Shown here piece by piece: positions 14,429 through 53,250 of a stretch of DNA of 64,000 bases (position 1 is its first letter; each line of letters starts with the position of its first letter). The stretch is from the IMG/VR virus record IMGVR_UViG_3300042540_001822, positions 62,001-126,000 of that record; one strand, 5' to 3'. The translations under genes were made by a program, and so were the position numbers. The notes under the pieces are model-generated. The model was not told where the DNA came from. It did not search any database and was given only the letters and a program-made list of their open reading frames with translations.

Positions 14429-15247
14429 ATGAAACACCTCCAATCCTTTTCCCTGTTCGAAGCCCAAACTTCTGTCCTGACCACAGACCAAGAGGCATTT
14501 TTGAATGAATACATCAAAGGAGCATGGTCGGTCAATCCAACAACAGGTCTGGTCGATGTGGAGGGAAATTTTGCTTGTAGTTCCAAAAGGCTGAAGTCTC
14601 TGTCGGGCATCTCGTTCGGACATGTGAGTGGGAATTTCGCCTGTTTCAACAACCAACTGACCTCCCTGAAAGGAGCACCACAGACGGTGGGTGGGGGTTT
14701 CGATTGTTCTTATAACGATCTCACTTCCCTGGAAGGAGCACCACAGACGGTGGGTGGGGATTTCAATTGCTTTTATAATTACAATCTTAAATCCTTGGAA
14801 GGAGCACCTCGGACTGTGGGTGTGAATTTCGATTGTTCTTATAACGATCTCACTTCCCTGGAAGGAGCACCTCAGACGGTGGGTGGGGATTTCAATTGCT
14901 TTTATAATTACAATCTTAAATCCTTGGAAGGAGCACCTCGGACTGTGGGTGTGAATTTCCTTTCTGACAAATTCCAATTAGAAGAAGGCGAATGGAACAT
15001 GCAAGGATGGCTGGAGGTTTTGAACACAGGAACGGAAGAAGCCAAAAAATTGATTTCCACCCTGCCATGGCTACAACCGGACTGGTGGAACTTGGAACTC
15101 CAACGGGATCCCGGTAAAACAGTTCATCTATTGGGGTCTTTATGGAAACATATGCCAAAGGACATGCAATCTGCAATTAAGATTCCCGGGGGATATGAAG
15201 ATGATTTCGAACTGTTTTCTGGATTTAACGAGCTGGGCTTGTTTTAG
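14429..15247 (+). CDS. LRR-like variable-module protein 1 (5 modules)
   Basis: FxCxxNxLTSLEGAPQTV repeats; start moved to MKHLQ; internal 129-bp duplication. Confidence 0.9.
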   Translation: MKHLQSFSLFEAQTSVLTTDQEAFLNEYIKGAWSVNPTTGLVDVEGNFACSSKRLKSLSGISFGHVSGNFACFNNQLTSLKGAPQTVGGGFDCSYNDLTSLEGAPQTVGGDFNCFYNYNLKSLEGAPRTVGVNFDCSYNDLTSLEGAPQTVGGDFNCFYNYNLKSLEGAPRTVGVNFLSDKFQLEEGEWNMQGWLEVLNTGTEEAKKLISTLPWLQPDWWNLELQRDPGKTVHLLGSLWKHMPKDMQSAIKIPGGYEDDFELFSGFNELGLF

Positions 15248-15262
15248 AGGATATATAGGAGA

Positions 15263-15886
15263 ATGAAACACCTCCAATCCTTTTCCCTGTTCGAAGCCCA
15301 AACTTCTTTCCTGACAACCGACCAAAAGGAATTTTTAAATGAATGCACCAAAGGAGCATGGTCGGTCAACCGGCAGACCGGTCTGGTCAATGTGGAGGGG
15401 AATTTTGACTGTAGTTTCAAATCACTAAAGTCTCTGCCTGACATCTCGTTCGGACACGTCAGTGGTCATTACGGCTGTTTCAACAACCAACTGACCTCCC
15501 TCGAGGGAGCACCCCAGACGGTAGGCGGGGGTTTCTACTGTTCCAACAACAAACTGACCTCCCTCGAAGGATCCCCACAGACTGTGGGTGGGGATTTTTG
15601 GTGTGACGAATTCGAATTAGATTCAGGCAAATGGAACATGCAAGGATGGGTGGAAGTTCTGAACACAGGAACACCAGCAGCCCAAAAATTGATTTCCACC
15701 CTTCCATGGATCCAACCGGACTGGTGGAACCTGGAACTCCAACGGGATCCCGGGAAGACGGTTCATCTATTGGCCACTGCATGGAATCACATGCCAAAGG
15801 ACATGCAATCTGGAATTAAGATTCCTCGGGGATATGAAGGTGATTTCGAACTGTTTTCCGGATTTGACGAGCTGGGCTTGTTTTAA
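15263..15886 (+). CDS. LRR-like variable-module protein 2 (2 modules)
   Basis: Paralogue; ends SGFDELGLF. Confidence 0.9.
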   Translation: MKHLQSFSLFEAQTSFLTTDQKEFLNECTKGAWSVNRQTGLVNVEGNFDCSFKSLKSLPDISFGHVSGHYGCFNNQLTSLEGAPQTVGGGFYCSNNKLTSLEGSPQTVGGDFWCDEFELDSGKWNMQGWVEVLNTGTPAAQKLISTLPWIQPDWWNLELQRDPGKTVHLLATAWNHMPKDMQSGIKIPRGYEGDFELFSGFDELGLF

Positions 15887-15903
15887 AGGATATATATAAG
15901 GAC

Positions 15904-16716
15904 ATGAAACACCTCCAGTCCTTCGTACTTTTCGAAGCCCAAACTTCTGTCCTGACACCCCGCCAAAATAAATTTTTGAATGGATGCACCAAAGAAACAT
16001 GGTCGGTCAACCGGCAGACTGGTCTGGTCGATGTGAAGGGAAATTTTGACTGTAGTTTCAAATCACTAAAGTCTCTGCATGGCATCTCGTTCGGAAACGT
16101 CAGTGGTCATTTTGGCTGTATATACAACCAACTGACCTCCCTGAAAGGATCACCCCAGACGGTGGGTGGGAATTTCAACTGTTCCACCAACCGACTGACT
16201 TCTCTAGAAGGAGCACCGCAGAAGGTGGGTGTGAGTTTCGACTGTGGTGTAAACAAATTGACCTCCTTGAAAGGATCACCACAGACGGTGGGTGGGATTT
16301 TCTCCTGTTACAACAACCGACTGACCTCTCTCGAAGGAGCACCTCAGAAGGTTGGCTCGAATTTTTCTTGTACTTTTAACGATCTCACTTCCCTGAAAGG
16401 AGCACCTGAGACGGTGGGTGGGTATTTTACGTGTGACGAATTCAAATTAGATTCGGGTGAATGGAACATGGAAGGATGGGTGGAGGTTTTGAACACAGGA
16501 ACACCAGCAGCCCAAAAATTGATTTCCACCCTTCCATGGCTCCAACCAGACTGGTGGAACTCGGAACTCCAACGGGATCCAGCGAAAACAGTTCATCTAT
16601 TGGGGTCTTCATGGAAACATATGCCAAAGGACATTCAATCTGCAATTAAGATTCCTCGGGGATATGAAGGTGATTTTGAATTGTTTTCTGGATTTGACGA
16701 GCTGGGGTTGTTTTAA
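15904..16716 (+). CDS. LRR-like variable-module protein 3 (5 modules)
   Basis: Paralogue. Confidence 0.9.
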   Translation: MKHLQSFVLFEAQTSVLTPRQNKFLNGCTKETWSVNRQTGLVDVKGNFDCSFKSLKSLHGISFGNVSGHFGCIYNQLTSLKGSPQTVGGNFNCSTNRLTSLEGAPQKVGVSFDCGVNKLTSLKGSPQTVGGIFSCYNNRLTSLEGAPQKVGSNFSCTFNDLTSLKGAPETVGGYFTCDEFKLDSGEWNMEGWVEVLNTGTPAAQKLISTLPWLQPDWWNSELQRDPAKTVHLLGSSWKHMPKDIQSAIKIPRGYEGDFELFSGFDELGLF

Positions 16717-16731
16717 AGGATATATAGAGGG

Positions 16732-17544
16732 ATGAAACACATCCAATCCTTTTCTCTGTTCGAAGCCCAAACTTCTGTCCTGACCACAGACCAAGAGGCA
16801 TTTTTGAATGAATTCACCGACGGGACCTGGTCGGTTAATCCAACAACTGGTTTGGTGGACGTTCAGGGTGATTTTAACTGTTTCGGTCAAGGTCTGAAAT
16901 CACTTCGAAAAATATCTTTCGGTCATGTGAGTGGGTATTTCTCCTTTTCCGACAACCAACTGACCTCCCTGGCAGGGGCACCCCAGACGGTGAGTGGGCA
17001 TTTCTTCTGTTCCCGCAACCAACTGACCTCCCTTAAAGGAGCACCCCAGACGGTGGATGGGCCTTTCTACTGTTACAAAAACAAACTGACCTCCCTCGAA
17101 GGAGCACCTCAGACGGTGTATGGGGATTTCCGGTGTTACAATAACCAACTGACCTCCCTAGAAGGAGCACCACAGACGGTGGGCGGGGATTTCTCTTGCT
17201 ACAACAACCAACTGACCTCCCTGGAAGGAGCACCTCAGACGGTGGGTGGGTATTTTACGTGTGACGAATTCCAATTAGATTCGGGTGAATGGAACATGGA
17301 AGGATGGCTGAGGGTTTTGAAAACAGGAAAAACAAAAGCCAAAAAATTGATTCTCACCCTGCCATGGCTACAACCGGACTGGTGGAACTCGGAACTTCAG
17401 CGGGATCCAGGGAAAACCGTTCATCTATTGGGGTCTTTGTGGAAACATATGCCAAAGGACATGCAATCTGGAATTAAGATTCCTCGGGGATATGAAGGTG
17501 ATTTTGAATTGTTTTCTGGATTTGACGAGCTGGGGTTGTTTTAA
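16732..17544 (+). CDS. LRR-like variable-module protein 4 (5 modules)
   Basis: Paralogue. Confidence 0.9.
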   Translation: MKHIQSFSLFEAQTSVLTTDQEAFLNEFTDGTWSVNPTTGLVDVQGDFNCFGQGLKSLRKISFGHVSGYFSFSDNQLTSLAGAPQTVSGHFFCSRNQLTSLKGAPQTVDGPFYCYKNKLTSLEGAPQTVYGDFRCYNNQLTSLEGAPQTVGGDFSCYNNQLTSLEGAPQTVGGYFTCDEFQLDSGEWNMEGWLRVLKTGKTKAKKLILTLPWLQPDWWNSELQRDPGKTVHLLGSLWKHMPKDMQSGIKIPRGYEGDFELFSGFDELGLF

Positions 17545-17559: not shown

Positions 17560-18384
17560 ATGAAACACCTCCAGTCCTTCGTACTTTTCGAAGCCAAAGC
17601 TGCTCGTCTTCCTTCTGGACTTACTCAAAGTCAAGAAAATTTCTTGAACCGACACACCAGAGGAACATGGTCTGTTAATCCAACGACCGGTCTGGTAGAT
17701 GTTTTTGGGGAATTTTACTGTTTCGGTCAAGGTCTGAAATCACTTCGAAAAATATCTTTCGGTCATGTGAGTGGGAATTTCGACTTTTCTTCCAACAAAC
17801 AAACCTCTCTGAAAGGAGCACCCCAGACGGTTAAACGTCAATTCAATTGTTCTGATAACGAACTGACCTCCCTGGAAGGAGCACCTCAGGAGGTAGGTAG
17901 GAGTTTCTACTGTTACAAAAACAAACTGACTTCCCTAGAAGGATCACCTAAGACTGTAGGCGGTGATTTCGACTGTGCTATCAACCATCTGACTTCCCTT
18001 AAAGGAGCACCACAAACGGTGGATGGTCGTTTCTACTGTGATAGGAACAAATTAACCTCCCTGGAAGGAGCACCTCAGACGGTGGTTGGGAATTTTAAGT
18101 GTGACGAATTCGAATTAGATTCAGGTGAATGGAACATGGAAGGATGGCTGAGGGTTTTGAAAACAGGAAAAACAAAAGCCAGAAAATTGATTTGCACCCT
18201 TCCATGGCTACAACCGAACTGGTGGAACTCTGAACTTCAGCGGGATCCCGGTAAAACAGTTCATCTATTGGGGTCTTTGTGGAAACATATGCCAAAGGAC
18301 ATGCAATCTGGAATTAAGATTCCTCGGGGATATGAAGGTGATTTTGAATTGTTTTCTGGATTTGACGAGCTGGGGCTGTTTTAA
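17560..18384 (+). CDS. LRR-like variable-module protein 5 (5 modules)
   Basis: Paralogue. Confidence 0.9.
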   Translation: MKHLQSFVLFEAKAARLPSGLTQSQENFLNRHTRGTWSVNPTTGLVDVFGEFYCFGQGLKSLRKISFGHVSGNFDFSSNKQTSLKGAPQTVKRQFNCSDNELTSLEGAPQEVGRSFYCYKNKLTSLEGSPKTVGGDFDCAINHLTSLKGAPQTVDGRFYCDRNKLTSLEGAPQTVVGNFKCDEFELDSGEWNMEGWLRVLKTGKTKARKLICTLPWLQPNWWNSELQRDPGKTVHLLGSLWKHMPKDMQSGIKIPRGYEGDFELFSGFDELGLF

Positions 18385-18399: not shown

Positions 18400-19278
18400 A
18401 TGAAATATCTCGTTTCATTTGTCCTTTTCGAAACCGAAAAGACTTCAGGCCTGACACCCGGCCAAGAGGCATTTTTGAATGAATGCTCCAGCAAGACCTG
18501 GTCGGTTAACCGGCAGAATGGTCTGGTCGATGTGCAAGGAGGTTTTACTTGTAGTTTCAAATCCCTAACGTCTCTGCCTGACATCTCGTTCGGAAACGTC
18601 AGTGGTCATTTCATCTGTTCCAACAACCAAATGACCTCCCTTGATGGAGCACCACAGAAGGTGGGTGGGATTTTCTCCTGTGCCGGCAATCAGCTGACCT
18701 CCCTAAAAGGAGCAACCCAGAATGTGGGCGGGAATTTTTGGTGTCACCAAAACCAGCTGACCTCCCTGGAAGGAGCACCCCAGACGGTGAACGGGAATTT
18801 CCACTGTTACTACAACCGACTGACCTCTCTCGAAGGAGCACCCCAGACGGTAAAAAAGAATTTCCACTGTTACAAAAACCAACTGACCTCACTTAAAGGA
18901 GCACCTGAGACGGTGGGTGGGAATTTTGAATGTTCCAACAACAAACTCCAATCCCTGGAAGGAGCACCTCATACGATAAACGGGGGTTTTCGGTGTGACG
19001 AATTCCATTTATATTCAGGCAAATGGAACATGCAAGGATGGGTGGAGGTTTTGAACACAGGAACACCAGCAGCCCAAAAATTGATTTCCACCCTTCCATG
19101 GATCCAACCGGACTGGTGGAACCAGGAACTCCAAAGGGATCCTGGGAAGACGGTTCATCTGTTGTCTACCATGTGGAACCACATGCCAAAGGACATGCAA
19201 TCTGCAATTCAGATCCCTCGGGGATATGAAGGTGATTTTGAATTGTTTACTGGATTTGACGAGCTGGGCTTGTTTTAA
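18400..19278 (+). CDS. LRR-like variable-module protein 6 (6 modules)
   Basis: Paralogue. Confidence 0.9.
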   Translation: MKYLVSFVLFETEKTSGLTPGQEAFLNECSSKTWSVNRQNGLVDVQGGFTCSFKSLTSLPDISFGNVSGHFICSNNQMTSLDGAPQKVGGIFSCAGNQLTSLKGATQNVGGNFWCHQNQLTSLEGAPQTVNGNFHCYYNRLTSLEGAPQTVKKNFHCYKNQLTSLKGAPETVGGNFECSNNKLQSLEGAPHTINGGFRCDEFHLYSGKWNMQGWVEVLNTGTPAAQKLISTLPWIQPDWWNQELQRDPGKTVHLLSTMWNHMPKDMQSAIQIPRGYEGDFELFTGFDELGLF

Positions 19279-19295: not shown

Positions 19296-20171
19296 ATGAA
19301 ACACATTCAATCCTTTTCCCTGTTCGAAGCCCAAACTTCTGTCCTGACAACCGACCAAGAGGAATTTTTAAATGAATGCACCGACGGGACCTGGTCGGTT
19401 AATCCAACAACAGGTCTGGTAGATGTTAAAGGAGATTTTGATTGTAGTTCCAAAAGGCTGAAGTCTTTGTCGGGCATCTCGTTCGGACATGTCAGTGGGT
19501 ATTTCTTCTGTTCCAACAACCAATTGACCTCCCTGAAAGGAGCACCTCAGACGGTGAGTGGGACTTTCTTCTGTACTGACAACAAACTGACCTCCCTGAA
19601 AGGAGCACCACAGACGGTGGGTGGGAGTTTCTACTGCGGTGAAAACCAATTGACCTCCCTGGAAGGTGCACCCCAGACGGTGAGTGAGGATTTTTGGTGT
19701 CACCAAAACCGACTGACCTCCCTCGAAGGAGCACCCCAGACGGTGGGTGGAAGTTTCAACTGTATGGACAACCGGCTGACCTCCCTGGCGGGAGCACCTC
19801 AGACGGTGGATGTGGATTTCAATTGCTTTCATAACAATCTTAAATCCTTGGAAGGAGCACCTCAGAAGGTGGGTAGGAATTTTAAGTGTAACGGATTCCA
19901 ATTAGATCCAGGCAAATGGAACATGGAAGGATGGCTGGAGGTTCTGAACACAGGAACACCAGCAGCCCAAAAATTGATTCTAACCCTTCCATGGCTACAA
20001 CCGAACTGGTGGAACTCTGAACTTCAGCGGGATCCCGGTAAAACAGTTCATCTATTGGCCACTGTATGGAATGACATGACAAAGAACATGCAATCTGCAA
20101 TTAAGATTCCTAAGGGATATGAAGATGATTTCGAACTGTTTTCTGGATTTGACGAGCTGGGCTTGTTTTAA
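19296..20171 (+). CDS. LRR-like variable-module protein 7 (6 modules)
   Basis: Paralogue. Confidence 0.9.
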   Translation: MKHIQSFSLFEAQTSVLTTDQEEFLNECTDGTWSVNPTTGLVDVKGDFDCSSKRLKSLSGISFGHVSGYFFCSNNQLTSLKGAPQTVSGTFFCTDNKLTSLKGAPQTVGGSFYCGENQLTSLEGAPQTVSEDFWCHQNRLTSLEGAPQTVGGSFNCMDNRLTSLAGAPQTVDVDFNCFHNNLKSLEGAPQKVGRNFKCNGFQLDPGKWNMEGWLEVLNTGTPAAQKLILTLPWLQPNWWNSELQRDPGKTVHLLATVWNDMTKNMQSAIKIPKGYEDDFELFSGFDELGLF

Positions 20172-20186: not shown

Positions 20187-20810
20187 ATGAAACACATCCA
20201 ATCCTTTTCTCTGTTCGAAGCCCAAACTTCTGTCCTGACAACCGACCAAGAGGAATTTTTAAATGAATGCACCGACGGGACCTGGTCGGTCAACCGGCAC
20301 ACTGGTCTGGTCAATGTGCAAGGAGGTTTTGCTTGTAGTTTCAAAAGTCTAACGTCTCTGAATGGCATCTCGTTCGGACACGTCAGTGGTAATTTCTTCT
20401 GTTTCTACAACCATCTGACCTCCCTGGAAGGAGCACCTCAGACGGTGGGTGGGGATTTCTTCTGTGATAAAAACAGATTAACCTCCCTGGAAGGAGCACC
20501 ACAAGAAATAAATGGTCGATTTCTTTGTGATGAATTTGAATTAATCAAGGGTAAATGGAACATTGAAGGATGGGCGGAGGTTCTGAACACGGGAACGGAA
20601 GAAGCCAAAAAATTGATTCTCACCCTTCCGTGGCTCCAACCGGACTGGTGGAACTCGGAACTCCAACGGGATCCAGGGAAGACGGTTCATCTATTGGCCA
20701 CTGTATGGAAGAGCATGCCAAAGGACATGCAATCTGCAATTAAGATCCCTCGGGGATATGAAGGTGATTTCGAATTGTTTTCTGGATTTGACGAGCTGGG
20801 TTTGTTTTAA
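20187..20810 (+). CDS. LRR-like variable-module protein 8 (2 modules)
   Basis: Paralogue. Confidence 0.9.
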   Translation: MKHIQSFSLFEAQTSVLTTDQEEFLNECTDGTWSVNRHTGLVNVQGGFACSFKSLTSLNGISFGHVSGNFFCFYNHLTSLEGAPQTVGGDFFCDKNRLTSLEGAPQEINGRFLCDEFELIKGKWNIEGWAEVLNTGTEEAKKLILTLPWLQPDWWNSELQRDPGKTVHLLATVWKSMPKDMQSAIKIPRGYEGDFELFSGFDELGLF

Positions 20811-25528: not shown

Positions 25529-26410
25529 ATGAAACATCTGATTCCATTTAGGATCTACGAATCCCAGACGACTTCAGGTCTTACGGAGGGACAGAAGGAA
25601 TTCTTGAACAAATACACACGAGGAACCTGGTCCGTCAATCCAACAACAGGTTTGGTGGATATAGATGGGTATTTTGATTGTTCAGGTAGTAAAATTAAAA
25701 ACTTTATGGGAATTCAATTTGGTGAAGTGACACGATCTTTTGATTGCGAGTCTAACCTTTTAACTTCTTTGGAAGGATCGCCCAGGTTCGTGCGTGGTAC
25801 TTTTAGATGTAACAATAACTCTATCACCTCTTTGGAAGGATCTCCCCAAACTGTAGGGGGGGATTTCCTTTGCAGCAAAAACTCACTTTCTTCGATTAAA
25901 GGAGCTCCAAGAAAAGTTGGTGAGGATTTTTGGTGCAATGATAATGATATAGAAACACTAGAGGGTGGTCCAGATATTGTTGGTAAAGATTTTGAATGCG
26001 AAAATAACCATCTGAGCTCTCTTAAGGGATCACCAAAAACGATTCCGGGAGATTTTTATTGTTATGGAAACCCTTTATTAATTTCTCTCGAAGGAGCACC
26101 ACAGACTATAGATGGGATTTTCTTCCACGACAAAATAAAAATGAAAAAAGGAGAATGGAACATGCGAGGATGGGTGGAGGTTCTGAACACAGGATCAGAA
26201 AAAGACAAAAAATTGATTCTCACCCTGCCATGGCTCCAATCGGACTGGTGGAACTTGGAACTCCAAAGAGATCCTGGGAAGACGGTTCATCTATTGGCCA
26301 ATGTATGGAATCTTATTCCAAAGAACATGCAATCTGCAATTAAGATTCCTAAAGGATATGAAGATGATTTCGAACTGTTTTCCGGATTTAACGAGCTGGG
26401 TTTGTTTTAA
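25529..26410 (+). CDS. LRR-like variable-module protein 9 (6 modules)
   Basis: Paralogue with more divergent modules. Confidence 0.9.
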   Translation: MKHLIPFRIYESQTTSGLTEGQKEFLNKYTRGTWSVNPTTGLVDIDGYFDCSGSKIKNFMGIQFGEVTRSFDCESNLLTSLEGSPRFVRGTFRCNNNSITSLEGSPQTVGGDFLCSKNSLSSIKGAPRKVGEDFWCNDNDIETLEGGPDIVGKDFECENNHLSSLKGSPKTIPGDFYCYGNPLLISLEGAPQTIDGIFFHDKIKMKKGEWNMRGWVEVLNTGSEKDKKLILTLPWLQSDWWNLELQRDPGKTVHLLANVWNLIPKNMQSAIKIPKGYEDDFELFSGFNELGLF

Positions 26411-26424: not shown

Positions 26425-26997
26425 ATGAAACACCTGAAATTATTCGAAAATTTCACGAAAGATGATTTGGATAATTTGATTTCGGGATTTGAGGAACTCG
26501 GAATTAACAAAAAGAAATTTCTCAGAATTAAATTTGTTGGTATTTACGTAACTGAATCTGATAGAACAAATGAAGCTGATTTCAGATTTCATAATGATAG
26601 AATTTTGAGGATCCCAATTTCGGAATTTGAAAAAGAAGATTTAGAACCCGGCAAAGAATCTTTTTCGAAAACCCTCCAAGATTCGGTTTTATATGCCATC
26701 AGAAATGGTGAAGCCGAAGTAAATCCAGATTGTGTGGGTGAATTATATATTGGCGAAACTTTTGATCCTAGTACCTTAATCTCCGTCGCCGAAAAAACAC
26801 AAACCCTGGATGGATTTTGGGATCTTGTCACCCAATATTTATATGATGTTGGAACTGATATCATTTATGACCATTTCAGTAATGAAGGTATAATGGAAGA
26901 ATTCGCTGATTTTTTCTTTGACGAATGCAAGAATTTAAAGCCAAAATTTTGGATAGAAAAAGAAGGTGAAAAATGGGGGGAAATCAGTAAAATATAA
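26425..26997 (+). CDS. Acidic protein with N-terminal LISGFEELG motif
   Basis: MKHLKLFENF...DLDNLISGFEELGI. Confidence 0.8.
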   Translation: MKHLKLFENFTKDDLDNLISGFEELGINKKKFLRIKFVGIYVTESDRTNEADFRFHNDRILRIPISEFEKEDLEPGKESFSKTLQDSVLYAIRNGEAEVNPDCVGELYIGETFDPSTLISVAEKTQTLDGFWDLVTQYLYDVGTDIIYDHFSNEGIMEEFADFFFDECKNLKPKFWIEKEGEKWGEISKI

Positions 26998-27001: not shown

Positions 27002-27754
27002 ATGAAACATCTTCTCCCATTTAGGATATACGAATCCCAGACGACTTCAGGTCTGACCGAGGAACAGCAGGAATTCTTGAACAAATACACCGAAGGAACC
27101 TGGTCTGTCAATCCAACAACAGGTTTGGTGGACGTTCAGGGTGATTTTAACTGTAGTTCCGAAAGACTGAAGTCTCTGCTGGACATCCATTTCGGACATG
27201 TGGTTGGGAATTTCAACTGTTACGACAACCGACTGACCTCGCTGGCGGGAGCACCCCAGACGGTGGGTGGGAATTTCAACTGTTACAACAACAAACTGAC
27301 CTCCCTGGAAGGATCACCTCAGACGGTGGGTGGGGATTTCAATTGCTTTTTTAACGATCTTAAATCCTTGGAAGGAGCACCTCAGACGGTGGGCGGGAAT
27401 TTCGATTTCTCTCCTAACGATCTTAAATCCTTGGAAGGAGCACCCTATACGATAAATGGGATTTTTATTTCTGACGAATTCAAATTAGATGCTGGCAAAT
27501 GGAACATGGCAGGATGGCTGAAGGTTCTCAACACAGGAACAGAAGAAGCCAAAAAATTGATTCTCACCCTGCCATGGCTCCAACCGGACTGGTGGAACTT
27601 GGAACTCCAACGGGATCCAGGCAAAACAGTCCATCTGTTGGGGTCTTTATGGAACCACTTGCCAAAGAACATTCAATCTGCAATCAAGATTCCTAAGGGA
27701 TATGAAGATCAGATGGATCTGTTTTCTGGATTCGACGAGCTGGGTTTGTTTTAG
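27002..27754 (+). CDS. LRR-like variable-module protein 10 (4 modules)
   Basis: Start moved to MKHLLPF. Confidence 0.9.
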   Translation: MKHLLPFRIYESQTTSGLTEEQQEFLNKYTEGTWSVNPTTGLVDVQGDFNCSSERLKSLLDIHFGHVVGNFNCYDNRLTSLAGAPQTVGGNFNCYNNKLTSLEGSPQTVGGDFNCFFNDLKSLEGAPQTVGGNFDFSPNDLKSLEGAPYTINGIFISDEFKLDAGKWNMAGWLKVLNTGTEEAKKLILTLPWLQPDWWNLELQRDPGKTVHLLGSLWNHLPKNIQSAIKIPKGYEDQMDLFSGFDELGLF

Positions 27755-27769: not shown

Positions 27770-28963
27770 ATGAAACACATTCAATCCTTTTCCCTGTTCG
27801 AAGCTCGGAAGACTTCAGGCCTGACCCAAAAGCAAAAGACTTTCTTGACCAAATACACAATGGGCAGCTGGACATATAATCCGGCCACTGGGATGGTAGA
27901 TGTGGAGGGAAATTTTGACTGTAGTTTCAAATTCATAAAGTCTCTGCCTGGCATCTCGTTCGGACATGTGAGTGGGAATTTTGATTGTTCCGGCAATCAG
28001 CTGACCTCCCTGGCAGGAGCACCCCAGACGGTGGATGGGGGTTTCTTCTGTTCCAGCAACCAACTGACCTCCCTGGAAGGAGCACCTCAGACGGTGGATG
28101 GGACTTTCAACTGTTCCAACAACAAGCTGACCTCCCTGGAAGGAGCACCTCAGACGGTTGGCGGGGATTTTTCCTGTACTTATAACAATCTCACTTCCCT
28201 GGAAGGAGTACCTCAGACGGTAGGAGGTGATTTCTACTGTTATCACAACCAACTGACCTCCCTGGCAGGAGCACCACAGACGGTGGATGGGGATTTCTAC
28301 TGTGAAAACAACCAGCTGACCTCCCTGGAAGGAGCACCCCAGACGGTGAACGGGAATTTCCACTGTTTCTACAACCGGCTGTCCTCCCTGGAAGGAGCAC
28401 CCCAGACGTTGGATGGGGATTTCGAATGTGGATTTAACCAACTGACCTCTCTGGCAGGAGCTCCCCAGACGTTGGATGGGGATTTCGGATGTGATAACAA
28501 CCGACTGACCTCCCTAGAAGGAGCTCCCCAGACGTTGGATGGGAATTTCAAATGTGATAACAACCGACTGACCTCCCTAAAAGGAGCACCCCAGACGGTG
28601 GGTGGGTATTTCATGTGTTTCTACAACCCGCTGTCCTCCCTGAAAGGATCACCCCAGACGGTGGTTGGGAATTTTTGGTGTGACGAATTCGATTTAGATC
28701 CAGGCAAATGGAACATGGAAGGATGGCTGGAGGTTCTGGACACTAGATCAGAAGAAGCCAAAAAATTGATTCTCACCCTTCTATGGCTCCAACCGGACTG
28801 GTGGAACCAGGAACTCCAAAGGGATCCAGGGAAAACAGTTCATCTATTGGCCACTGTATGGAAACATATGCCAAAGGACATGCAATCTGCAATTAAGATT
28901 CCTAAGGGATATGAAGATGATTTCGAACTGTTTACTGGATTTGACGAGCTGGACTTGTTTTGA
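27770..28963 (+). CDS. LRR-like variable-module protein 11 (11 modules)
   Basis: Longest paralogue; ends TGFDELDLF. Confidence 0.9.
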   Translation: MKHIQSFSLFEARKTSGLTQKQKTFLTKYTMGSWTYNPATGMVDVEGNFDCSFKFIKSLPGISFGHVSGNFDCSGNQLTSLAGAPQTVDGGFFCSSNQLTSLEGAPQTVDGTFNCSNNKLTSLEGAPQTVGGDFSCTYNNLTSLEGVPQTVGGDFYCYHNQLTSLAGAPQTVDGDFYCENNQLTSLEGAPQTVNGNFHCFYNRLSSLEGAPQTLDGDFECGFNQLTSLAGAPQTLDGDFGCDNNRLTSLEGAPQTLDGNFKCDNNRLTSLKGAPQTVGGYFMCFYNPLSSLKGSPQTVVGNFWCDEFDLDPGKWNMEGWLEVLDTRSEEAKKLILTLLWLQPDWWNQELQRDPGKTVHLLATVWKHMPKDMQSAIKIPKGYEDDFELFTGFDELDLF

Positions 28964-29071: not shown

Positions 29072-29728
29072 ATGCCATTGATTTCTTGGAATTCTTTTTG
29101 TTCTAGTAATATCGAATATTTAAATGAATCCGATGAATTAGAAACATTAATTGGGGGTTTTGAAGATTTGGGTTTTTCCGAAAAAAGATGGTCCTGGTCT
29201 GAAATTGAATCCGCCTGGCATAAAATTATGTGGGAAGGAATTTTTAATTTTGATGTTAACCACACCATATCAAGATTAAATTGCACATTGGCAGGCAATA
29301 ATTTAAGGGTTGAAGTCTACAAACCATTTTCTGTAACTATCAATCAAAAAGTTTTCATCAAATACTTTACCTCTAATTTACAAAAAATTCCTTCTTCTGG
29401 AAAACGAATTGAAAGTTTCACCTTAAACCAAATTTTAGAAACTTTAGATAAAATGGCAAGGGGGTTTTCCATACAATACGGACAAATTGAAGAAATTTTT
29501 GTTCATCTATTGGATGAATTGCGCCAGGATGAAAAAAACCCCAATCTTTGGTTGAAACTTAAGGTAGATTTGGACCCCGAAACGGATCAGGCGGGAAACT
29601 CTAATTTCCGATTATCTTTGTCAGAAATGAAAGTAGATCCTAATTGGGACCAGGTGGCGGATATAATGTGTGATCCAAGAATGCTTAAAGAATTTAAACG
29701 CAATTTGTATGAAAAAGCGGGAATCTAA
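29072..29728 (+). CDS. Protein with LIGGFEDLG motif and WSWSEI repeat
   Basis: Related to 29709 and 30359. Confidence 0.75.
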   Translation: MPLISWNSFCSSNIEYLNESDELETLIGGFEDLGFSEKRWSWSEIESAWHKIMWEGIFNFDVNHTISRLNCTLAGNNLRVEVYKPFSVTINQKVFIKYFTSNLQKIPSSGKRIESFTLNQILETLDKMARGFSIQYGQIEEIFVHLLDELRQDEKNPNLWLKLKVDLDPETDQAGNSNFRLSLSEMKVDPNWDQVADIMCDPRMLKEFKRNLYEKAGI

Positions 29729-30362
29729 AATTAGGTCGTTCTCTTCCTTTCGAGAATCTGAGGATTTTGACGATGTTTTATTCGGATTCGAGGAACTTGG
29801 TTTATCAGAAAAAACCTACTCTTGGTCACAGATTTTGGAAGTTTGGGGTAATTTACGTTGGCTAAAAACAATTGTGGAAATAAGTATCCAAAAGCGGGCA
29901 GCACAAAATCGAAAACAATTGTCTGTAAAATTTGACGAACGTCAGATAAAACTAGAAATTGAATTTGAAGGAAGATTCGAGGTAGAAATTGATGTGGATT
30001 TTTTATCAGAAGAATTAGAAAATTCATTGGCTGTTCTTCCCGTTGATAAGACAACTGGATCTGAACCTAGATTTACGGAAAACCACATAATCGAAACTTT
30101 GTCTCATTCCGACCTGGAAGAACAGATTCAAGATGCAATTAATGATAGACAGCAAAAAGAAAATTCAAACTGGTGGGTTGAAATATATAATTACAAAACA
30201 GGAGATCCGGAGAATGATGTTATACATAATGGACCGGCGGAAATTGATTTTCATTTAGAAGCTGAATTGGCTGTAAAAAAAACAGAGTTTAATGAGATTA
30301 TGATGTCCGAAAAAATGGTAAAATGGCTCAAAAAAACACTTGAAAAATCAACATATACATGA
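29709..30362 (+). CDS. Protein with VLFGFEELG motif
   Basis: Start moved to MKKRES. Confidence 0.75.
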   Translation: MKKRESKIRSFSSFRESEDFDDVLFGFEELGLSEKTYSWSQILEVWGNLRWLKTIVEISIQKRAAQNRKQLSVKFDERQIKLEIEFEGRFEVEIDVDFLSEELENSLAVLPVDKTTGSEPRFTENHIIETLSHSDLEEQIQDAINDRQQKENSNWWVEIYNYKTGDPENDVIHNGPAEIDFHLEAELAVKKTEFNEIMMSEKMVKWLKKTLEKSTYT

Positions 30363-37134: not shown

Positions 37135-37638
37135 ATGAAATTACAAAATTTTTCGAATTTTTCCCCCCAAAAAAAAGATGACTATGATATTGATTCTTTG
37201 ATTTCTGGATTTGAGGATTTGGGCATAAATGAAAAGCCCAAGGTTTGGTTTTTTGATTACTCTTGTTTTGGAGATGGAACTCACCAAAGAAACATTCTCG
37301 CCATACAGGCAATTTCCGAAATGGACGCCAAAAGAATGATGATGGAATATTTTAAAGCTGGAAGACCATCGAATTTTTCCCAAAAGTTGGGAAGCGATAA
37401 AGGCTGGGAAAATTTTCTAGAATTTATTTTAGAAAAAGCCAATCCTGCTCTTGGAATGGAAGTAATCGATTTAGTAAAAGAAATTCCATTTCCTAACCCT
37501 TCTCGATTCAAAGAGGGAATTAATAATTTGGTTTTATATTGGTCTGAAAATCAAGCAATTGATTGTTTTCATGCTATGAATGACGTAGAAGAATATCTTA
37601 GAAAAAAATATAATATTGGATTGGAAGATTTTTCCTAA
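37135..37638 (+). CDS. Acidic LISGFEDLGINEKPKVWF family protein
   Basis: Tandem paralogue. Confidence 0.8.
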   Translation: MKLQNFSNFSPQKKDDYDIDSLISGFEDLGINEKPKVWFFDYSCFGDGTHQRNILAIQAISEMDAKRMMMEYFKAGRPSNFSQKLGSDKGWENFLEFILEKANPALGMEVIDLVKEIPFPNPSRFKEGINNLVLYWSENQAIDCFHAMNDVEEYLRKKYNIGLEDFS

Positions 37639-40010: not shown

Positions 40011-41201
40011 ATGGAAAATAGAATTTTAAATTTTTCTGATTTCATCTTGGAATCAACAATTAACAGGCCAAATTACTGGGAGGTCAATTACCCTGATAAA
40101 TGGAAGGCTTTGCAAGATCTTGGGTTTGTGGATGTAACCACAGATAGAATGAAGAAAAATGGAAATAACATCATCATAAAAAACGACAATTTACCTCTTT
40201 ACCCCGCCGGAATTTACTATCAAGATTCGGGATATTTAAGAAACGTTGCTGCAAAAAATGGATTTATTACCAGAGACATGAATTGGGTTCAAGCAGCAGA
40301 TTACTTGATTGATAAATTTAGCAAATTAAAACAAATTATTCCTTCAGGCGTTCCCCCAAAAGTTTTCATTTCAATTTTAGAAAAATTAGAAAGATCGATT
40401 GTATCAAAATCGTCAGGAAAAAAAGTAATATTTGATCCATCTTCTAAAGAAGTTACTGTAAAAAGTACATTTGTACTTCATGTGGATGAAATTCCAGAAT
40501 TTATATCTTTGGGTTACAAATTAGGTCATGTGGATTCATTCAAATTGAAAGGAGATTTGACCCGTTATCCAGAAATAACTAAAGCACAATGCGATTTAAT
40601 TTTTCCATCTGAATGTAATGAATTGGAGGTTTTGGGTGTGAAATTTTCATCGGATTGTCAAAATGTTCCTATTTTTCCACCCGCAAGAACTTCGATAAAT
40701 GTAAATATAGAGGGAATTAAAAATTTAAAATGCTTAAGTCCAGATCAACCACAAAAGATTGAAAGTTTAAAGGTTATAAGTGACCTTGAATCTCTGTATG
40801 GATTATACATCATTCAATGTGAAAAAGTAAATTTAAGAGTAAAAAAAAATACAGGACCTCGACCTTGGGAAAATAAACTCACTGGATTGACATTCCCAGA
40901 CAGCTCTAACGATCCTTATTATTCTGGCGTCAAAACTACGGGCTGGGACATTGAAAATTGGGTAAAAGTTCTCCGAGAAGGAAATGAAGAGCAAAAAAAA
41001 CTGATGATAACACTTCCGATGCTAGATTCAAACTTTTGGAATGAACGGATGGAAGAAAATCCAGGTGAAACAATCCACATTTTGGCCCCGATTTGGAATG
41101 ATCCAGGATTTACAGAAATAAACAAGGGAATTAAAATTCCTCCCGGATATGAAGACCAATTAGATTTGTTTTCTGGATTTTCGGAACTGGGATTGTTCTA
41201 G
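40011..41201 (+). CDS. Divergent member sharing the LRR-family C-terminal domain
   Basis: WVKVLREGNEEQKKLMITLP...PGETIHIL...GYEDQLDLFSGFSELGLF; start after GATATATA at 39998. Confidence 0.8.
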   Translation: MENRILNFSDFILESTINRPNYWEVNYPDKWKALQDLGFVDVTTDRMKKNGNNIIIKNDNLPLYPAGIYYQDSGYLRNVAAKNGFITRDMNWVQAADYLIDKFSKLKQIIPSGVPPKVFISILEKLERSIVSKSSGKKVIFDPSSKEVTVKSTFVLHVDEIPEFISLGYKLGHVDSFKLKGDLTRYPEITKAQCDLIFPSECNELEVLGVKFSSDCQNVPIFPPARTSINVNIEGIKNLKCLSPDQPQKIESLKVISDLESLYGLYIIQCEKVNLRVKKNTGPRPWENKLTGLTFPDSSNDPYYSGVKTTGWDIENWVKVLREGNEEQKKLMITLPMLDSNFWNERMEENPGETIHILAPIWNDPGFTEINKGIKIPPGYEDQLDLFSGFSELGLF

Positions 41202-41215: not shown

Positions 41216-41986
41216 ATGAAACATTTATTTCCCTTTCCTCTGTTTGAATCCCGCAAACCTCCTTTAACCAAAGAACAGATTCAATTTTTGGAATTTCACA
41301 CTACCGGAACATGTAATTATAATTTTTCCTCCGGGAAAATAGACGTGGATGGGGTTTTTAGTTTAGAAGAAGATCAAGATTCTCTGATGGGATTGGAATT
41401 TGGAGTGGTCGAAGGAGGTTTCTCAATAAATGCAAATTTTCAAAATTTGAAAGGATTTCCAGAGGTAGTCGATGGTTTATTTTTTCTCCAATCAGATTTA
41501 ATTTCAGATCTCACCGGATCACCACAGTTTATAGAAAATTGTATGATACACAGCAAAAGCTTAAAATCTTTAAAGGGGGGTCCCAGAGAAGTAGGATCTA
41601 TGAGTCTCACCATTGAATTTCCATCTATTCAAAACTTACAAGGGGCTCCTGAAATTGTCAAAGAAAAGTTTAGATTAAGAATTTCGGGGTTCAAAAGTGG
41701 ATCCCCCATGGTGATAGTGTTTCTGCCTTTTACCTGGAACTTAGAGGGAAAGATTGAAATGTTAAAATTACAAAAGGGGGAAGAAAAAAATTTACTTTCT
41801 ACTTTAATTTCTGTGGAGGATGTTAAAAAATCTTTTAAAGAAAGACCATCACAAACTTTATATGACCTCGTAGAAGTGTGGAATTTACCCGGATTTTCAG
41901 AGATAAAAAAACAAATTCAAATCCCAGCAAATTTTAGGGACCAATTTGATTTAATGACAGGATTTAATGAACTAGGATTATTTTAG
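41216..41986 (+). CDS. Divergent LRR-like paralogue (about 4 degenerate modules)
   Basis: LKGFP/LTGSP/LKGGP/LQGAP; ends TGFNELGLF. Confidence 0.8.
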   Translation: MKHLFPFPLFESRKPPLTKEQIQFLEFHTTGTCNYNFSSGKIDVDGVFSLEEDQDSLMGLEFGVVEGGFSINANFQNLKGFPEVVDGLFFLQSDLISDLTGSPQFIENCMIHSKSLKSLKGGPREVGSMSLTIEFPSIQNLQGAPEIVKEKFRLRISGFKSGSPMVIVFLPFTWNLEGKIEMLKLQKGEEKNLLSTLISVEDVKKSFKERPSQTLYDLVEVWNLPGFSEIKKQIQIPANFRDQFDLMTGFNELGLF

Positions 41987-47027: not shown

Positions 47028-47057
47028 AATTTCTTTTGTGATTATCTACAAAATTAT

Positions 47058-48740: not shown

Positions 48741-48802
48741 ATTTTCATAATTCTTAATTTTAATTTAACATAATTTAACAATTCCGAAAATACATACACG
48801 GA

Positions 48803-50195: not shown

Positions 50196-50822
50196 ATGAA
50201 ACATCTGATTCCATTTAGGATCTACGAATCCCAGAAGGCTTCAGGACTTACTCGAAGTCAAGAGGAATTCTTGAACAAATACACCGAAGAAACATGGTCT
50301 GTTAATCCATCGACCGGTCTGGTGGATGTTCAAGGGGATTTTTTTTGTTACGATCGAGGCCTGAAATCCCTGTCAGGCATATCGTTCGGACATGTGAGTG
50401 GGGATTTCTACTGTGGTAAAAACAAATTGGCCTCCCTAGAAGGATCACCCCAGACGGTGGGTGGGGGTTTCTATTGTCAGGGAAACGACCTGACCTCCCT
50501 GGAAGGAGCACCACAAGAAATAAATGGTCGATTTCTTTGTGATGAATTTGAATTAATCAAGGGTAAATGGAACATGCGAGGATGGCTGGAGGTTCTGAAC
50601 ACAGGAACTCCAGAAGACAAAAAATTGATTTCCACCCTTCCGTGGCTCCAACTGGACTGGTGGAACTTGGAACTCCAACGGGATCCAGGGAAAACAGTTC
50701 ATCTGTTGTCCACCATGTGGAATGACATGCCAAAGGACATGCAATCTGCAATCAAGATTCCTAAAGGATATGAAGGTGATTTTGAATTGTTTTCTGGATT
50801 TGACGAGCTGGGGTTGTTTTAA
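50196..50822 (+). CDS. LRR-like variable-module protein 13 (2 modules)
   Basis: Paralogue. Confidence 0.9.
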   Translation: MKHLIPFRIYESQKASGLTRSQEEFLNKYTEETWSVNPSTGLVDVQGDFFCYDRGLKSLSGISFGHVSGDFYCGKNKLASLEGSPQTVGGGFYCQGNDLTSLEGAPQEINGRFLCDEFELIKGKWNMRGWLEVLNTGTPEDKKLISTLPWLQLDWWNLELQRDPGKTVHLLSTMWNDMPKDMQSAIKIPKGYEGDFELFSGFDELGLF

Positions 50823-50836: not shown

Positions 50837-51589
50837 ATGAAACATCTGATTCCATTTAGGATCTACGAAGCACAGACTACTTCAGGTCTTACGAAGAGAC
50901 AGGTTAAATTCTTAAACAAATACACAACTGGAGCCTGGTCTGTTAATCCAACGACAGGTTTGGTGGATGTTCAAGGGAATTTTTTTTGTTATTATCAATA
51001 TCTGAAATCCCTGTCAGGCATATCTTTCGGTCATGTAAATGGGAATTTCAACTGTAACACCAACCAACTGACTTCTCTGGAAGGAGCACCAAATACGGTG
51101 AGTGAAAATTTCGTTTGTTTCAACAACCGGCTGACCTCCCTGGAAGGAGCACCTCAGACGGTGGGTAATTATTTCGATTGTTCCCTCAACCAACTCCAGA
51201 CCCTGGAAGGAGCACCTCAAAGAGTGGGTGATAGTTTCGATTGTTCCAGAAACGAACTCCGATCCCTGGTAGGAGCACCTCATACGATAAACGGGGATTT
51301 TCTTTGTGACGAATTCAAATTAGATCCAGGCAAATGGAACATGGAAGGATGGCTGGAGGTTCTGAACACAGGAACTCCACAAGCCAAAAAATTGATTCTC
51401 ACCCTCCCATGGCTCCAACCGGACTGGTGGAACTTGGAACTCCAAAGGGATCCAGGTAAAACAGTTCATCTTTTGGGGTCTGCATGGAACCATATGCCAA
51501 AGGAAATGCAATCTGCAATCAAGATTCCTAAAGGATATGAAGGTGATTTCGAATTGTTTTCTGGATTCGATGAGTTGGGCTTGTTTTAG
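50837..51589 (+). CDS. LRR-like variable-module protein 14 (4 modules)
   Basis: Paralogue. Confidence 0.9.
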   Translation: MKHLIPFRIYEAQTTSGLTKRQVKFLNKYTTGAWSVNPTTGLVDVQGNFFCYYQYLKSLSGISFGHVNGNFNCNTNQLTSLEGAPNTVSENFVCFNNRLTSLEGAPQTVGNYFDCSLNQLQTLEGAPQRVGDSFDCSRNELRSLVGAPHTINGDFLCDEFKLDPGKWNMEGWLEVLNTGTPQAKKLILTLPWLQPDWWNLELQRDPGKTVHLLGSAWNHMPKEMQSAIKIPKGYEGDFELFSGFDELGLF

Positions 51590-51603
51590 AGGATATATAA
51601 ACC

Positions 51604-52335
51604 ATGAAACACATACTACCCTTTAAGATCTACGAATCACAATCAATGTCTTCTAGTTTAACACCACAGCAGGAAACTCTCTTGAATTTTTGTACAAAAA
51701 AAGGAAAATGGAGCGTGAATCCAACAACAGGTTTGGTGGACATTAATGGTGATTTCAAGTTGGCCTCAGATATGTTTATCCAAAATGATCAACTTCACAT
51801 TAAACCAACAAAAAGTTTTTTAGGAATCAGATTTGGAAATGTCGATGGGAAATTTGATTGTGTCGGCAATGAACTCCGATCCTTGGAAGGATCACCGCAG
51901 AAGGTTGGTGGAGAATTTTGGTGTTACAGAAACAATCTACAATCCTTGAAAGGAGGACCACGAACGGTTGGTGGAGGTTATGCATGTCAATTCAACGAAC
52001 TCCAATCCTTGGAAGGAGCACCACTGGAGGTTGGTGGTTTGGGATTTCAGTGTGATGAATTCAAATTAGATAAGGACAGTTGGAACTTACGGGGTTGGAT
52101 AGAGGTTTTAGAAACAGGAACCAAAAAGGCAAAGGATCTGATCAAGACCCTGCCCTATCTCCAACCGGACTGGTGGAACTTGGAACTCCAACGGGAACCT
52201 GGAAAGATCGTTCACCTGCTGGCACAGGCGTGGAAACACATGTCTGAGGACTTCAAATCTAAAATTGAGATTCCCGAGGGATATGAGAATGACTTTGGTT
52301 TCTTTTCTGAATTTGATGAGCTGGGGTTGTTTTGA
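51604..52335 (+). CDS. LRR-like variable-module protein 15 (3 modules)
   Basis: Paralogue; ends SEFDELGLF. Confidence 0.88.
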   Translation: MKHILPFKIYESQSMSSSLTPQQETLLNFCTKKGKWSVNPTTGLVDINGDFKLASDMFIQNDQLHIKPTKSFLGIRFGNVDGKFDCVGNELRSLEGSPQKVGGEFWCYRNNLQSLKGGPRTVGGGYACQFNELQSLEGAPLEVGGLGFQCDEFKLDKDSWNLRGWIEVLETGTKKAKDLIKTLPYLQPDWWNLELQREPGKIVHLLAQAWKHMSEDFKSKIEIPEGYENDFGFFSEFDELGLF

Positions 52336-52346
52336 GATATATATAA

Positions 52347-52745
52347 ATGTTAAAATATAATTTAATATTCATGAAATCTTCCAACCTTTATACAGCTTAC
52401 TTGGATTTTATCAACGAAGCTGCCAAACCAGAAGAAAGTTTTGAGCAATTTTGCAAAAATAGACTGGCAGGAGCCACTAAAATTACAGAAATGGCAAAGA
52501 AAAAAGGAGGTGATGCTCTATTGACTTTCCATCATTTCGAAGTTAAACTTCCAATTTATTCTAAAGCTTCAACAGGTAAATTTAAATTGAGCGAGGCCAC
52601 CACCAAATTAGATTCATTAGTTTCCAAACTAAATCAATCTCTCTCCACCACTGGCGAAATTAAAATGACTCAGGTCCAGTTTCAAAAATTGGTGGGTTTG
52701 ATTGAGGTTTGGGGAGAATTGATAATCAGATTCAAACAAAAATAA
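52347..52745 (+). CDS. Hypothetical protein with ...YLDFINE leader
   Basis: ORF track. Confidence 0.7.
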   Translation: MLKYNLIFMKSSNLYTAYLDFINEAAKPEESFEQFCKNRLAGATKITEMAKKKGGDALLTFHHFEVKLPIYSKASTGKFKLSEATTKLDSLVSKLNQSLSTTGEIKMTQVQFQKLVGLIEVWGELIIRFKQK

Positions 52746-52749
52746 AATC

Positions 52750-53250
52750 ATGGGAAAACACATTCGAGGATTAAATGAATTCGATGATTTTTCGGATCTA
52801 GATTCACTTATAGGGGGATTCGAGGAGCTAGGAATTACCAGCGTTTATGGGTGGGCTTTTCAGTGGGACAGCACGACCGAAGTTCCATTGGTTGAAATTG
52901 TAATTTCTTCTACTGCTAAGGAAGCTCTAGATATTTACTCCAAATATGGTTGGTTTTCGGAAGATGTTAGTTATATGATGGAATCCAGCAAACAAATAAA
53001 AACCATCTCGGACGTTTTCGACAATTTGGTTAAACAAAAAGTTATTTTTAACTCCAAAATCATATATGATCTTCGTCCTAAACAGGATTTGCAAATTAAA
53101 ACTGCTTATATAAAAACTCAAAGGAATAATCCATTTGAAATCACGGAAGTATTAAACACATATTTTACCAACGCGGAGGAAGTTTACAGAAAAACTTTCA
53201 TGCACCGAGGTTCTGCAGGTTTTGCAGGTGGACCTTTGATTAATATTTAA
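52750..53250 (+). CDS. Protein with N-terminal LIGGFEELG motif
   Basis: MGKHIRGLNEFDDFSDLDSLIGGFEELGI. Confidence 0.75.
   Translation: MGKHIRGLNEFDDFSDLDSLIGGFEELGITSVYGWAFQWDSTTEVPLVEIVISSTAKEALDIYSKYGWFSEDVSYMMESSKQIKTISDVFDNLVKQKVIFNSKIIYDLRPKQDLQIKTAYIKTQRNNPFEITEVLNTYFTNAEEVYRKTFMHRGSAGFAGGPLINI

Follow-up and report, generated by a model that had tools for sequence, protein, structure and literature searches.

The window analysed here, a 64,000-nucleotide stretch of the IMG/VR virus record IMGVR_UViG_3300042540_001822 (positions 62,001 to 126,000), encodes 26 proteins that carry variants of one short acidic motif, G-F-[ED]-[ED]-L-G, in most cases close to one end of the chain. Nearly all of them also begin with a common N-terminal leader, and a GATATATA box recurs ahead of leader-bearing genes. 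The combined explanation that we tentatively prefer, at somewhat less than even confidence, is that these proteins belong to a co-regulated accessory cohort provided with a portable two-part address tag.

A six-frame scan of the window gave 20 copies of GF[ED][ED]LG, 21 of F-[ED]-[ED]-L-G and 26 of the looser [GEF]-F-[EDNS]-[ED]-L-[GD]. All 26 lie in long plus-strand open reading frames (ORFs), and none was found in the other frames or on the minus strand of the window. Only 0.009 copies of GF[ED][ED]LG are expected from composition, and 1000 residue shuffles returned at most one; this is the shuffled-background check that a preliminary description of the DNA had proposed, run on the window. 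The motif is C-terminal in 17 proteins, lies 20-30 residues from the N-terminus in eight and is internal in one, at about residue 489 of the product of gene 34146 (genes are named by their first nucleotide), in agreement with the counts given earlier. Its C-terminal form is ...LFSGFDELGLF*, with the variants GFNELGLF, GFSELGLF, GFDELDLF and EFDELGLF. The codons used vary by family (GGA TTT GAG GAT TTG GGC, GGT TTT GAA GAT TTG GGT or GGG TTC GAA GAT CTT GGA), and the motif is therefore conserved by selection at the protein level, as had been proposed. The interleaving of its two classes in the same gene clusters was likewise evident. Calling the carriers otherwise unrelated was an overstatement, as they form four families in the window (17 leucine-rich repeat (LRR)-like proteins, five of family A, three of family B and one of family C), and the start given for the finding, 15210, was too late, one LRR gene beginning at 14429. 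The true gene starts are ATG 27002, ATG 29709 and, probably, ATG 40011; in the last case the listed ATG 39996 overlaps a GATATATA box, and ATG 40011, which gives the leader MENRILNFSDFILE, is the likely true start.

The nine motif carriers outside the LRR-like family belong to families A (36091, 36620, 37135, 52750 and the C-terminal part of 34146), B (29072, 29709 and 30359) and C (26425). Their N-terminal module, hereafter N-module, comprises 35-45 residues; it begins with a hydrophobic leader, continues through an acidic linker and closes with an amphipathic helix whose end reads [SG]-G-F-E-[DE]-L-G-φ. Alignment of A with B and of A with C by hhalign gave probabilities of 95% and 93%, in both cases over the first 30-48 residues only, and the LRR family aligned with A over the 12-residue motif only. 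Judged by these alignments, A, B and C share a homologous N-terminal module, set on bodies without other detectable similarity. In family A the invariant columns are G25, F26, E27, L29 and G30 together with M1, F6, F9, S21, W38, A64 and Y162; the motif is the sole invariant block, and the bodies drop to 25-38% identity. Over 18 N-modules, G-F-E-x-L-G is the only invariant part. An AlphaFold2 model of the family A protein 36091 assigned residues 1-30, as two loose helices, a predicted local distance difference test score (pLDDT) of 48-56, and the body a score above 85, so that in the model the N-module is a low-confidence appendage beyond the folded body.

A profile of 44 positions built from the 18 N-modules was used for an exhaustive search of 1.84 billion (1.84e9) representative proteins. 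It returned 24 matches at E<=1e-3, about 22 of them true; all of these come from the present lineage, and they carry roughly ten different bodies. A DNA pattern for L-I-S-G-F-[DE][DE]-L-G-I was found in one IMG/VR contig out of 2.9 million, and this contig encodes more N-module proteins with new bodies beyond the region of the window. The N-module is real, portable and extremely lineage-restricted. Searches of Pfam, PHROG, PDB and BFVD with families A, B and C and with the LRR model gave nothing significant. Neither PDB nor BFVD held any likeness to the family A body or module; no PDB chain resembled the N-module stretch at E<=10, and the LRR tail stretch had one chance-level match (E 1.1). 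As a side observation, the 34146 product has a Cys-rich stretch, NPCW-GY-x-VG-x-KTKNG-x-VPNCVP, just upstream of the motif (window 35500-35600, residues about 440-475). Similar in appearance to a small zinc ribbon placed within the N-module, it occurs also on two related contigs (176-889 and 4063-4737 of the stretches examined) and matches several PHROGs of unknown function.

The 17 tail-bearing genes constitute one family, whose members consist of the leader, a short N-domain, 2-13 repeats of 22 residues and a helical C-terminal domain of ~85 residues. The repeat consensus is L-T-S-L-x-G-A-P-x-T-V-x-G-x-F-x-C-x-x-N-x-L, with positions L1, S3, L4, G6, P8, V11, F15, C17, N20 and L22 near-fixed and positions 14, 16, 18, 19 and 21 hypervariable. 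A fixed LRR framework combined with hypervariable positions suggests an arms race, and we count it in favour of the preferred explanation. In an AlphaFold2 model of the 50196 product (pLDDT 90), the leader (residues 1-14) is disordered, with scores below 50; a β-solenoid comes next, and the C-terminal domain is made up of six helices, the last of which (residues 193-204) corresponds to the motif, with LGLF trailing behind it. LRR proteins are characterised by tandem repeats of 20-30 residues with an LxxLxLxxN/C core, which build a curved solenoid. The 22-residue repeat, the Leu/Asn/Cys ladder, the hypervariable surface positions and the predicted β-solenoid resemble those of bacterial LRR proteins of the internalin, YopM and IpaH type, which lack any equivalent of the leader and of the helical C-terminal domain. 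LRR proteins were the best Foldseek matches of the model, none of them significant (best E 0.08); of two family members scanned against Pfam, one narrowly passed the LRR_4 cut-off of 27, with a score of 28.2, but none of its stretches was significant by itself. One LRR protein, searched by tblastn, matched two Vibrio phages and huge uncultured phages in the repeat region only, and a literature search on LRR proteins of jumbo phages gave nothing relevant. Within the window the C-terminal domain of the LRR-like genes is ~88% conserved at the DNA level, third codon positions included, and the tail is no more conserved than the remainder of the domain. The shared tail of the 17 proteins in the window is therefore ordinary paralogy or gene conversion.

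The leader is a second shared signal; the preliminary description had rightly recorded its presence and missed this aspect. From 85 unique LRR-family sequences its consensus is M-K-H-[LI]-x-[PS]-F-x-[LVI]-[FY]-E-[AS], with F7 in 82, [LVI]9 in 80, E11 in 84 and [AS]12 in 82 of them, figures among which only those for positions 3, 9 and 12 are independent, as positions 4, 7, 10 and 11 were fixed in the search pattern. In its strict form the leader was counted 17 times in the window, compared with 0.02 in shuffles. Looser registers (MKHLKLFE-NF, MKRIKLFE-SF, MALKNFLDFFLTE-N and MENRILNFSDFILE-S) begin the proteins of families A-C, 12892, 177, 30994 and others. About 35 genes in 64 kb bear a leader, including nearly all motif carriers and several genes for motif-less proteins. 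Leaders of a similar kind begin LRR and non-LRR proteins in a 735-kb phage (LR756501) without the motif: positions 2950-6576 of the stretch examined encode a tandem array of related repeat proteins that begin in a leader-like manner (MIKKFGLFES and similar) and have neither the motif nor a helical C-terminal domain. It follows that the leader predates the motif and is more widely distributed. Among the motif-less bearers, the small basic Lys-rich protein at 30994-31329 is conserved in sister lineages and is the only carrier resembling a classical basic internal head protein. The LysM protein at 55973-57199 has a leader-like N-terminus and an upstream box, and a separate canonical GH19 endolysin (58951-59805) has no leader; a related contig encodes an endolysin-like protein with a leader (6362-7462 of the stretch examined). 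In tblastn searches against annotated phages, 55973 was matched through its LysM repeats only and 12892 had no match.

The GATATATA box occurs 25 times in the window against 1.3 expected, an approximately 19-fold excess, and on the strand of the following gene (e.g., 12869-12876, 15250-15257, 34134-34141, 55919-55926 and 59848-59855). An ORF starts 3-46 nucleotides (nt) downstream of 22 of the 25 boxes, and about 19 of them sit ahead of leader-bearing ORFs. One precedes a Mtd_N tail-fibre-like gene (59875-60384), and none precedes the PolB, ribonucleotide reductase or topoisomerase genes. From its placement, the box is likely to be a phage promoter for the cohort, possibly one acting late. Since its distance to the start is only 3-7 nt in many cases, many of the mRNAs may be leaderless. 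Its resemblance to the late box of phage T4 is loose only.

That the shared element is a portable tag for a common partner is, in our opinion, slightly more probable than the opposite. Its first part would be the unstructured N-terminal leader, present in shorter registers (MKHLKLFE-NF) outside the LRR family, and its second an amphipathic acidic helix that terminates in a Schellman-type cap, (F)-[ED]-[ED]-L-G-φ. Leader and helix are adjacent in families A, B and C, where they form the 35-45-residue module grafted onto different bodies, and in the LRR-like family the helix is the last one of the conserved C-terminal domain. We infer that the leader may act like the capsid targeting sequence (CTS) of phage T4 and be cut after the conserved Glu, with the result that the acidic helix would be situated close to an end in most mature proteins and at an internal position in 34146. 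The helix could then bind to a hub encoded by the phage and common to the cohort, for which the assembly core or the inner capsid is the most likely candidate, and the cohort would be packaged and subsequently delivered with the DNA. Head loading is the phage precedent known best, and it agrees with the leader, with a box that is likely to be late and with the signs of an arms race in the cargo. Packaging into the virion specifically is plausible, but seems to us less probable than not. The most elaborate version, a two-part head-loading and ejection signal with the helix at either end of the cargo and at least 35 packed proteins, including hypervariable LRR-like binders, injected against host defences, is unlikely.

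The T4 CTS system is the closest in kind, and the present one would be a new, two-part and much larger variant of it. In the T4 CTS, MKTYQEFIAE, residues 4 and 7 are responsible for targeting, while residues 8 and 10 direct cleavage after Glu; T4-type propeptides are N-terminal, 10-19 residues long and have an [LI]-x-E cleavage site, and T4 Alt undergoes C-terminal processing as well (PMC9026906). The leader described here agrees with this pattern ([LI]4, F7, [LVI]9, [FY]10, E11 and [AS]12), a pattern match only, in which positions 4, 7, 10 and 11 were partly pre-fixed. As in the T-even internal proteins, a short conserved N-terminal leader is found on otherwise unrelated, fast-evolving proteins, with hydrophobic residues at positions 4 and 7 and [LI]-x-E followed by a small residue (MKTYQEFIAE compared to MKHLQSFSLFE-A). 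In addition, the PolB of the present phage groups with T4-type and huge-phage polymerases, and a small basic Lys-rich leader protein (30994) exists here too. However, phage T4 has no second conserved element such as the acidic capped helix, its internal proteins are typically basic and DNA-binding whereas the cargo here consists of acidic LRR-like and small acidic proteins, and its cohort is far smaller. A gp21-like protease and gp22/gp23 homologues were not located in the related contigs reached.

The giant phages phiKZ, 201phi2-1 and SPN3US load many paralogs, among them ejection and inner-body proteins, into the head by N-terminal propeptides cut after Glu, as the present phage may do. The phiKZ-type paralogs have near-identical N-termini and a diverged remainder, as is the case here (PMC5694885). 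Their propeptides, unlike the leader, often exceed 100 residues and have the site [S/A/G]-x-E; no sequence similarity to the tag and no sign of kinship between the phage and phiKZ were detected. An analogy may also be drawn with the cargo-loading peptide of encapsulins, which is short, conserved and N- or C-terminal on unrelated cargo, and which docks inside an HK97-fold shell. Encapsulins are the only known system in which one tag is routinely found at opposite ends. Their consensus is Gly/Ser/Leu-rich whereas the element described here is acidic and helical, and they are cellular nanocompartments, with no shell gene known here. No description of the module, of the LRR-like family with its C-terminal domain or of the leader was found in the papers and family libraries searched.

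A number of findings weigh against the two-part tag and its proposed destination. A scan of metagenomes with the LRR alignment yielded 78 loci, in which the LRR tails fall into at least five types, one per contig in all but one case, namely T1 (...SGFDELGLF), T2 (...LLDL[QEV]R[AS]GI[FM]), T3 (...LQDL[KR]DFGL), T4 (...VDPWQDF[KR]L) and T5 (...LDDLEMLGDF[TM]). The leader is kept in all five types. The SGFDELGLF tail is restricted to this sub-lineage, sister lineages having LLDLQRAGIF, LQDLKDFGL and others, and over T1 and T2 the tail conserves only the cap Gly (G206) and the last Phe (F208). Furthermore, the two classes do not covary across lineages. In one T2 contig a family-B homologue was shifted in the same way as the LRR tails, from G-F-acid-acid to N/D-L-S/E-K/R in both classes, a covariation that further contigs did not uphold. 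The N-modules of other T2 contigs read MISGFEDLGI, KS[LM]EDLG[IV] or SFDDL-I, and a lineage with LLELVRSGIM tails retains MISGFEDLGI in one N-module. A T1-like side branch combines the tails [AS][GE][FL]S[ED]LGLF with the N-modules [TEN]-L-E-D-L-G-[FL]. On the evidence of the sister lineages, the universal N-module core is therefore φ-[EQ]-[DE]-L-G-φ, and the 8-9-residue identity between LRR tail and N-module is, on these comparisons, a property of the sub-lineage and not an obligatory coupling. The proposal of one shared portable tag is supported for the N-terminal class, with its invariant motif, hhalign matches, appendage in the AlphaFold2 model and ~ten bodies, and not for LRR tail and N-module as one obligatory signal, given that sister lineages differ in LRR tail while some of their N-modules keep SGFEDLG.

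Other points on the same side concern structure, composition and gene content. The motif helix of the LRR family belongs to the confident part of the fold (pLDDT about 92), and the L-G-φ end is a generic helix cap, so that the similarity could in part be convergent. The isoelectric point (pI) is below 7 in 26 of the 28 proteins examined, mostly 4.3-5.6, the basic ones being 30994 (pI 9.8) and 17560 (pI 8.6). The GATATATA box is also found ahead of leaderless genes and of one ATP-grasp enzyme gene. Finally, Pfam and PHROG searches of ~150 kb of related contigs (219-231 kb each), which may be incomplete, did not find capsid, portal, scaffold or prohead-protease genes; they yielded early small ORFs, Tad3, sugar-modification and replication genes, ClpP, DnaJ, Hsp20 and GlnA.

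The most probable alternative, although we consider it unlikely, is that the motif has no common function, the N-module being an inherited helix of diverged paralogs, the LRR tail the last helix of its own domain and their likeness a Schellman cap in an acidic setting. Such a cap has a hydrophobic residue at C3, polar residues at C2 and C1, Gly at C' and a hydrophobic residue at C''. F-E-D-L-G-I fits this arrangement, and both AlphaFold2 helices stop exactly there (H193-204 followed by LGLF, H15-28 followed by LGI); by the established rules of helix capping, part of the resemblance between tail and N-module is therefore structural. The lineage-specific tails, of which only the cap Gly and last Phe persist, and the unexceptional conservation of the tail within its domain point in the same direction. 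So do five tandem small paralogs at 20911-22882 (121-145 aa; PHROGs 12005 and 25117, function unknown), which are leaderless and have an N-proximal L-[RK]-E-L-G-F-D-E, an echo of the E-L-G-φ helix end. The cap, however, covers L-G-φ and neither the invariant S-G-F-E-[DE] and the acidic run upstream nor the grafting onto many bodies without other detectable similarity. It also leaves unexplained that the module is detached and of low confidence in the model and that it is consistently paired with the leader, and the N-module of family C (26425) is identical to the LRR tail at 9 of 15 positions and similar at 5 more.

It is less probable still that the motif is a short linear motif for a host hub, such as the sliding clamp, a chaperone or protease adaptor or a defence protein, that acts once the proteins have been synthesised or delivered and brings LRR binders and acidic proteins to one host machine. 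An acidic-hydrophobic helix at or near the terminus, as seen in most carriers, is typical of hub-binding tails, the phage itself encodes a gp45-like clamp candidate, ClpP and DnaJ, and tail types that differ by lineage would be in keeping with co-evolution with a partner in host or phage. The LRR tail end ELGLF* loosely resembles clamp-binding pentapeptides, and this serves as a lead only. A clamp-binding motif, for which a terminal pentapeptide of the Q-L-x-L-F type shared with the replicative polymerase of the same genome would be expected, was considered and rejected: the split PolB of a near-identical contig ends in NLFMINTLF* and not in the motif, Gln is absent from the tails, and in the N-modules L-G-φ is not followed by a terminal aromatic residue. 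The PDB comparisons reported above likewise weigh against a host-hub motif.

A maturation-protease site, G-F-E|D, that would make the module of A-C (~27 residues) a removable propeptide as in phiKZ and SPN3US appears improbable. It is true that phiKZ-type cleavage follows [S/A/G]-x-E, that giant-phage propeptides can be long and cut several times (PMC5694885), and that G-F-E is invariant in the 18 N-modules of this sub-lineage. Yet conservation extends over at least 9 residues, far beyond a three-residue site. The LRR tails have G-F-D-E, and the sister lineages either show T-L-E, N-L-E or S-[LM]-E or lack the Glu altogether. The site found in the leader itself, [LVI]-[FY]-E, corresponds to those of T4 and not to those of phiKZ. 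Equally improbable is a pairing of the two classes, to which the adaptor-effector system of the preliminary description corresponds and by which an acidic protein would use its helix to bind, or take the place of, the terminal helix in the C-terminal domain of an LRR protein, giving binder-plus-cargo heterodimers: the helices are near-identical in this sub-lineage and the interleaved genes have a common upstream box, but we found no positive evidence for pairing, the classes do not covary over lineages and the gene numbers are unequal (17 versus 9 in the window).

With regard to the genome itself, the window matches freshwater-lake metagenomic contigs of 219-232 kb, one of which is listed as a viral genome in IMG/VR, and a megablast search with 24 kb found no close relatives among cultured phages. 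The gene content points to a large phage. It includes a split family-B polymerase, most closely related to those of 460-735-kb uncultured phages and of Lak phages, ribonucleotide reductase, a split topoisomerase II, the clamp candidate, ClpP, DnaJ and a T4-type RNA ligase, as well as a GH19 endolysin, the Mtd_N tail-fibre-like protein, a sigma factor and Tad3. In a 219,475-bp relative the family-B DNA polymerase is encoded by two genes about 19 kb apart, between which lie LRR genes, topoisomerase II subunits, UvdE, DnaJ and the clamp candidate. A block of glycosyltransferase, methyltransferase and metallophosphatase genes is situated between the LRR arrays of the window (42133-50183), and genes for DegT, PglD, an acetyltransferase and glutamine synthetase are present in addition on related contigs; by its gene content, the phage has an extensive capacity for sugar modification. 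The window also encodes a UmuC-like polymerase V (54321-55538), an Srd- or HNH-like protein (53833-55849 region) and the sigma factor (9822-10706), while the Tad3-family (anti-Thoeris) gene is on a flanking contig (2126-2707 of the stretch examined). The coordinates of the cohort are collected in the table.

Table. Motif carriers, motif-less leader proteins and an example box in the 64,000-nt window.
Feature	Position	Strand	Motif position
LRR-like gene 1, leader MKHLQSFSLFE	14429..15247	+	tail GFNELG 15221-15238
LRR-like gene	15263..15886	+	tail 15860-15877
LRR-like gene	15904..16716	+	tail 16690-16707
LRR-like gene	16732..17544	+	tail 17518-17535
LRR-like gene	17560..18384	+	tail 18358-18375
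LRR-like gene	18400..19278	+	tail 19252-19269
LRR-like gene	19296..20171	+	tail 20145-20162
LRR-like gene	20187..20810	+	tail 20784-20801
LRR-like gene	25529..26410	+	tail GFNELG 26384-26401
Family C acidic protein, leader MKHLKLFENF	26425..26997	+	N-module 26485-26502
LRR-like gene, start ATG 27002	27002..27754	+	tail 27728-27745
LRR-like gene, 13 repeats	27770..28963	+	tail variant GFDELD 28937-28954
Family B1	29072..29728	+	N-module 29156-29173
Family B2, start ATG 29709	29709..30362	+	N-module 29784-29801
Family B3	30359..30970	+	N-module 30422-30439
Small basic Lys-rich protein, pI 9.8, full leader MKHLANFLLFE, motif-less	30994..31329	+	
LRR-like gene	32634..33458	+	tail 33432-33449
Family A5, 643 aa: N-domain, Cys-rich NPCW..VPNCVP, internal motif, family-A body	34146..36077	+	internal 35604-35621
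Family A1	36091..36600	+	N-module 36163-36180
Family A2	36620..37120	+	N-module 36689-36706
Family A3	37135..37638	+	N-module 37207-37224
Divergent C-terminal-domain family member, leader MENRILNFSDFILE, N-proximal ALQDLGF	40011..41201	+	tail GFSELG 41175-41192
Divergent LRR-like gene	41216..41986	+	tail GFNELG 41960-41977
LRR-like gene, AlphaFold2-modelled	50196..50822	+	tail 50796-50813
LRR-like gene	50837..51589	+	tail 51563-51580
LRR-like gene	51604..52335	+	tail variant EFDELG 52309-52326
Family A4	52750..53250	+	N-module 52816-52833
476-aa acidic protein, short-register leader MKRIKLFESF, motif-less	12892..14322	+	
124-aa protein, leader MKHVELFENF, GATATATA box ahead	177..551	-	
LysM protein, leader-like N-terminus MQNLISYSSF, GATATATA box ahead	55973..57199	+	
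Example GATATATA promoter-like box	15250..15257	+	

Whatever the destination of these proteins, their genes form a regulon-like cohort, delimited by tag, leader and GATATATA box together, in an otherwise almost unannotated genome, and a portable tag of 35-45 residues lends itself to a direct trial for loading foreign proteins into phage particles. If the tag directs entry into the virion, the idea known from phage T4 of a conserved targeting peptide on hypervariable cargo would extend to huge uncultured phages, with a second, position-independent signal added. Dozens of unknown genes would then become candidate delivered anti-defence factors, and the LRR-like family would constitute a natural, phage-made binder library in which each repeat has five hypervariable positions set in a fixed framework. 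A destination other than the head would make the system more novel still. If, on the other hand, the cohort is indeed a packed arsenal, it would represent protein delivery of a scale and modularity undescribed for any phage.

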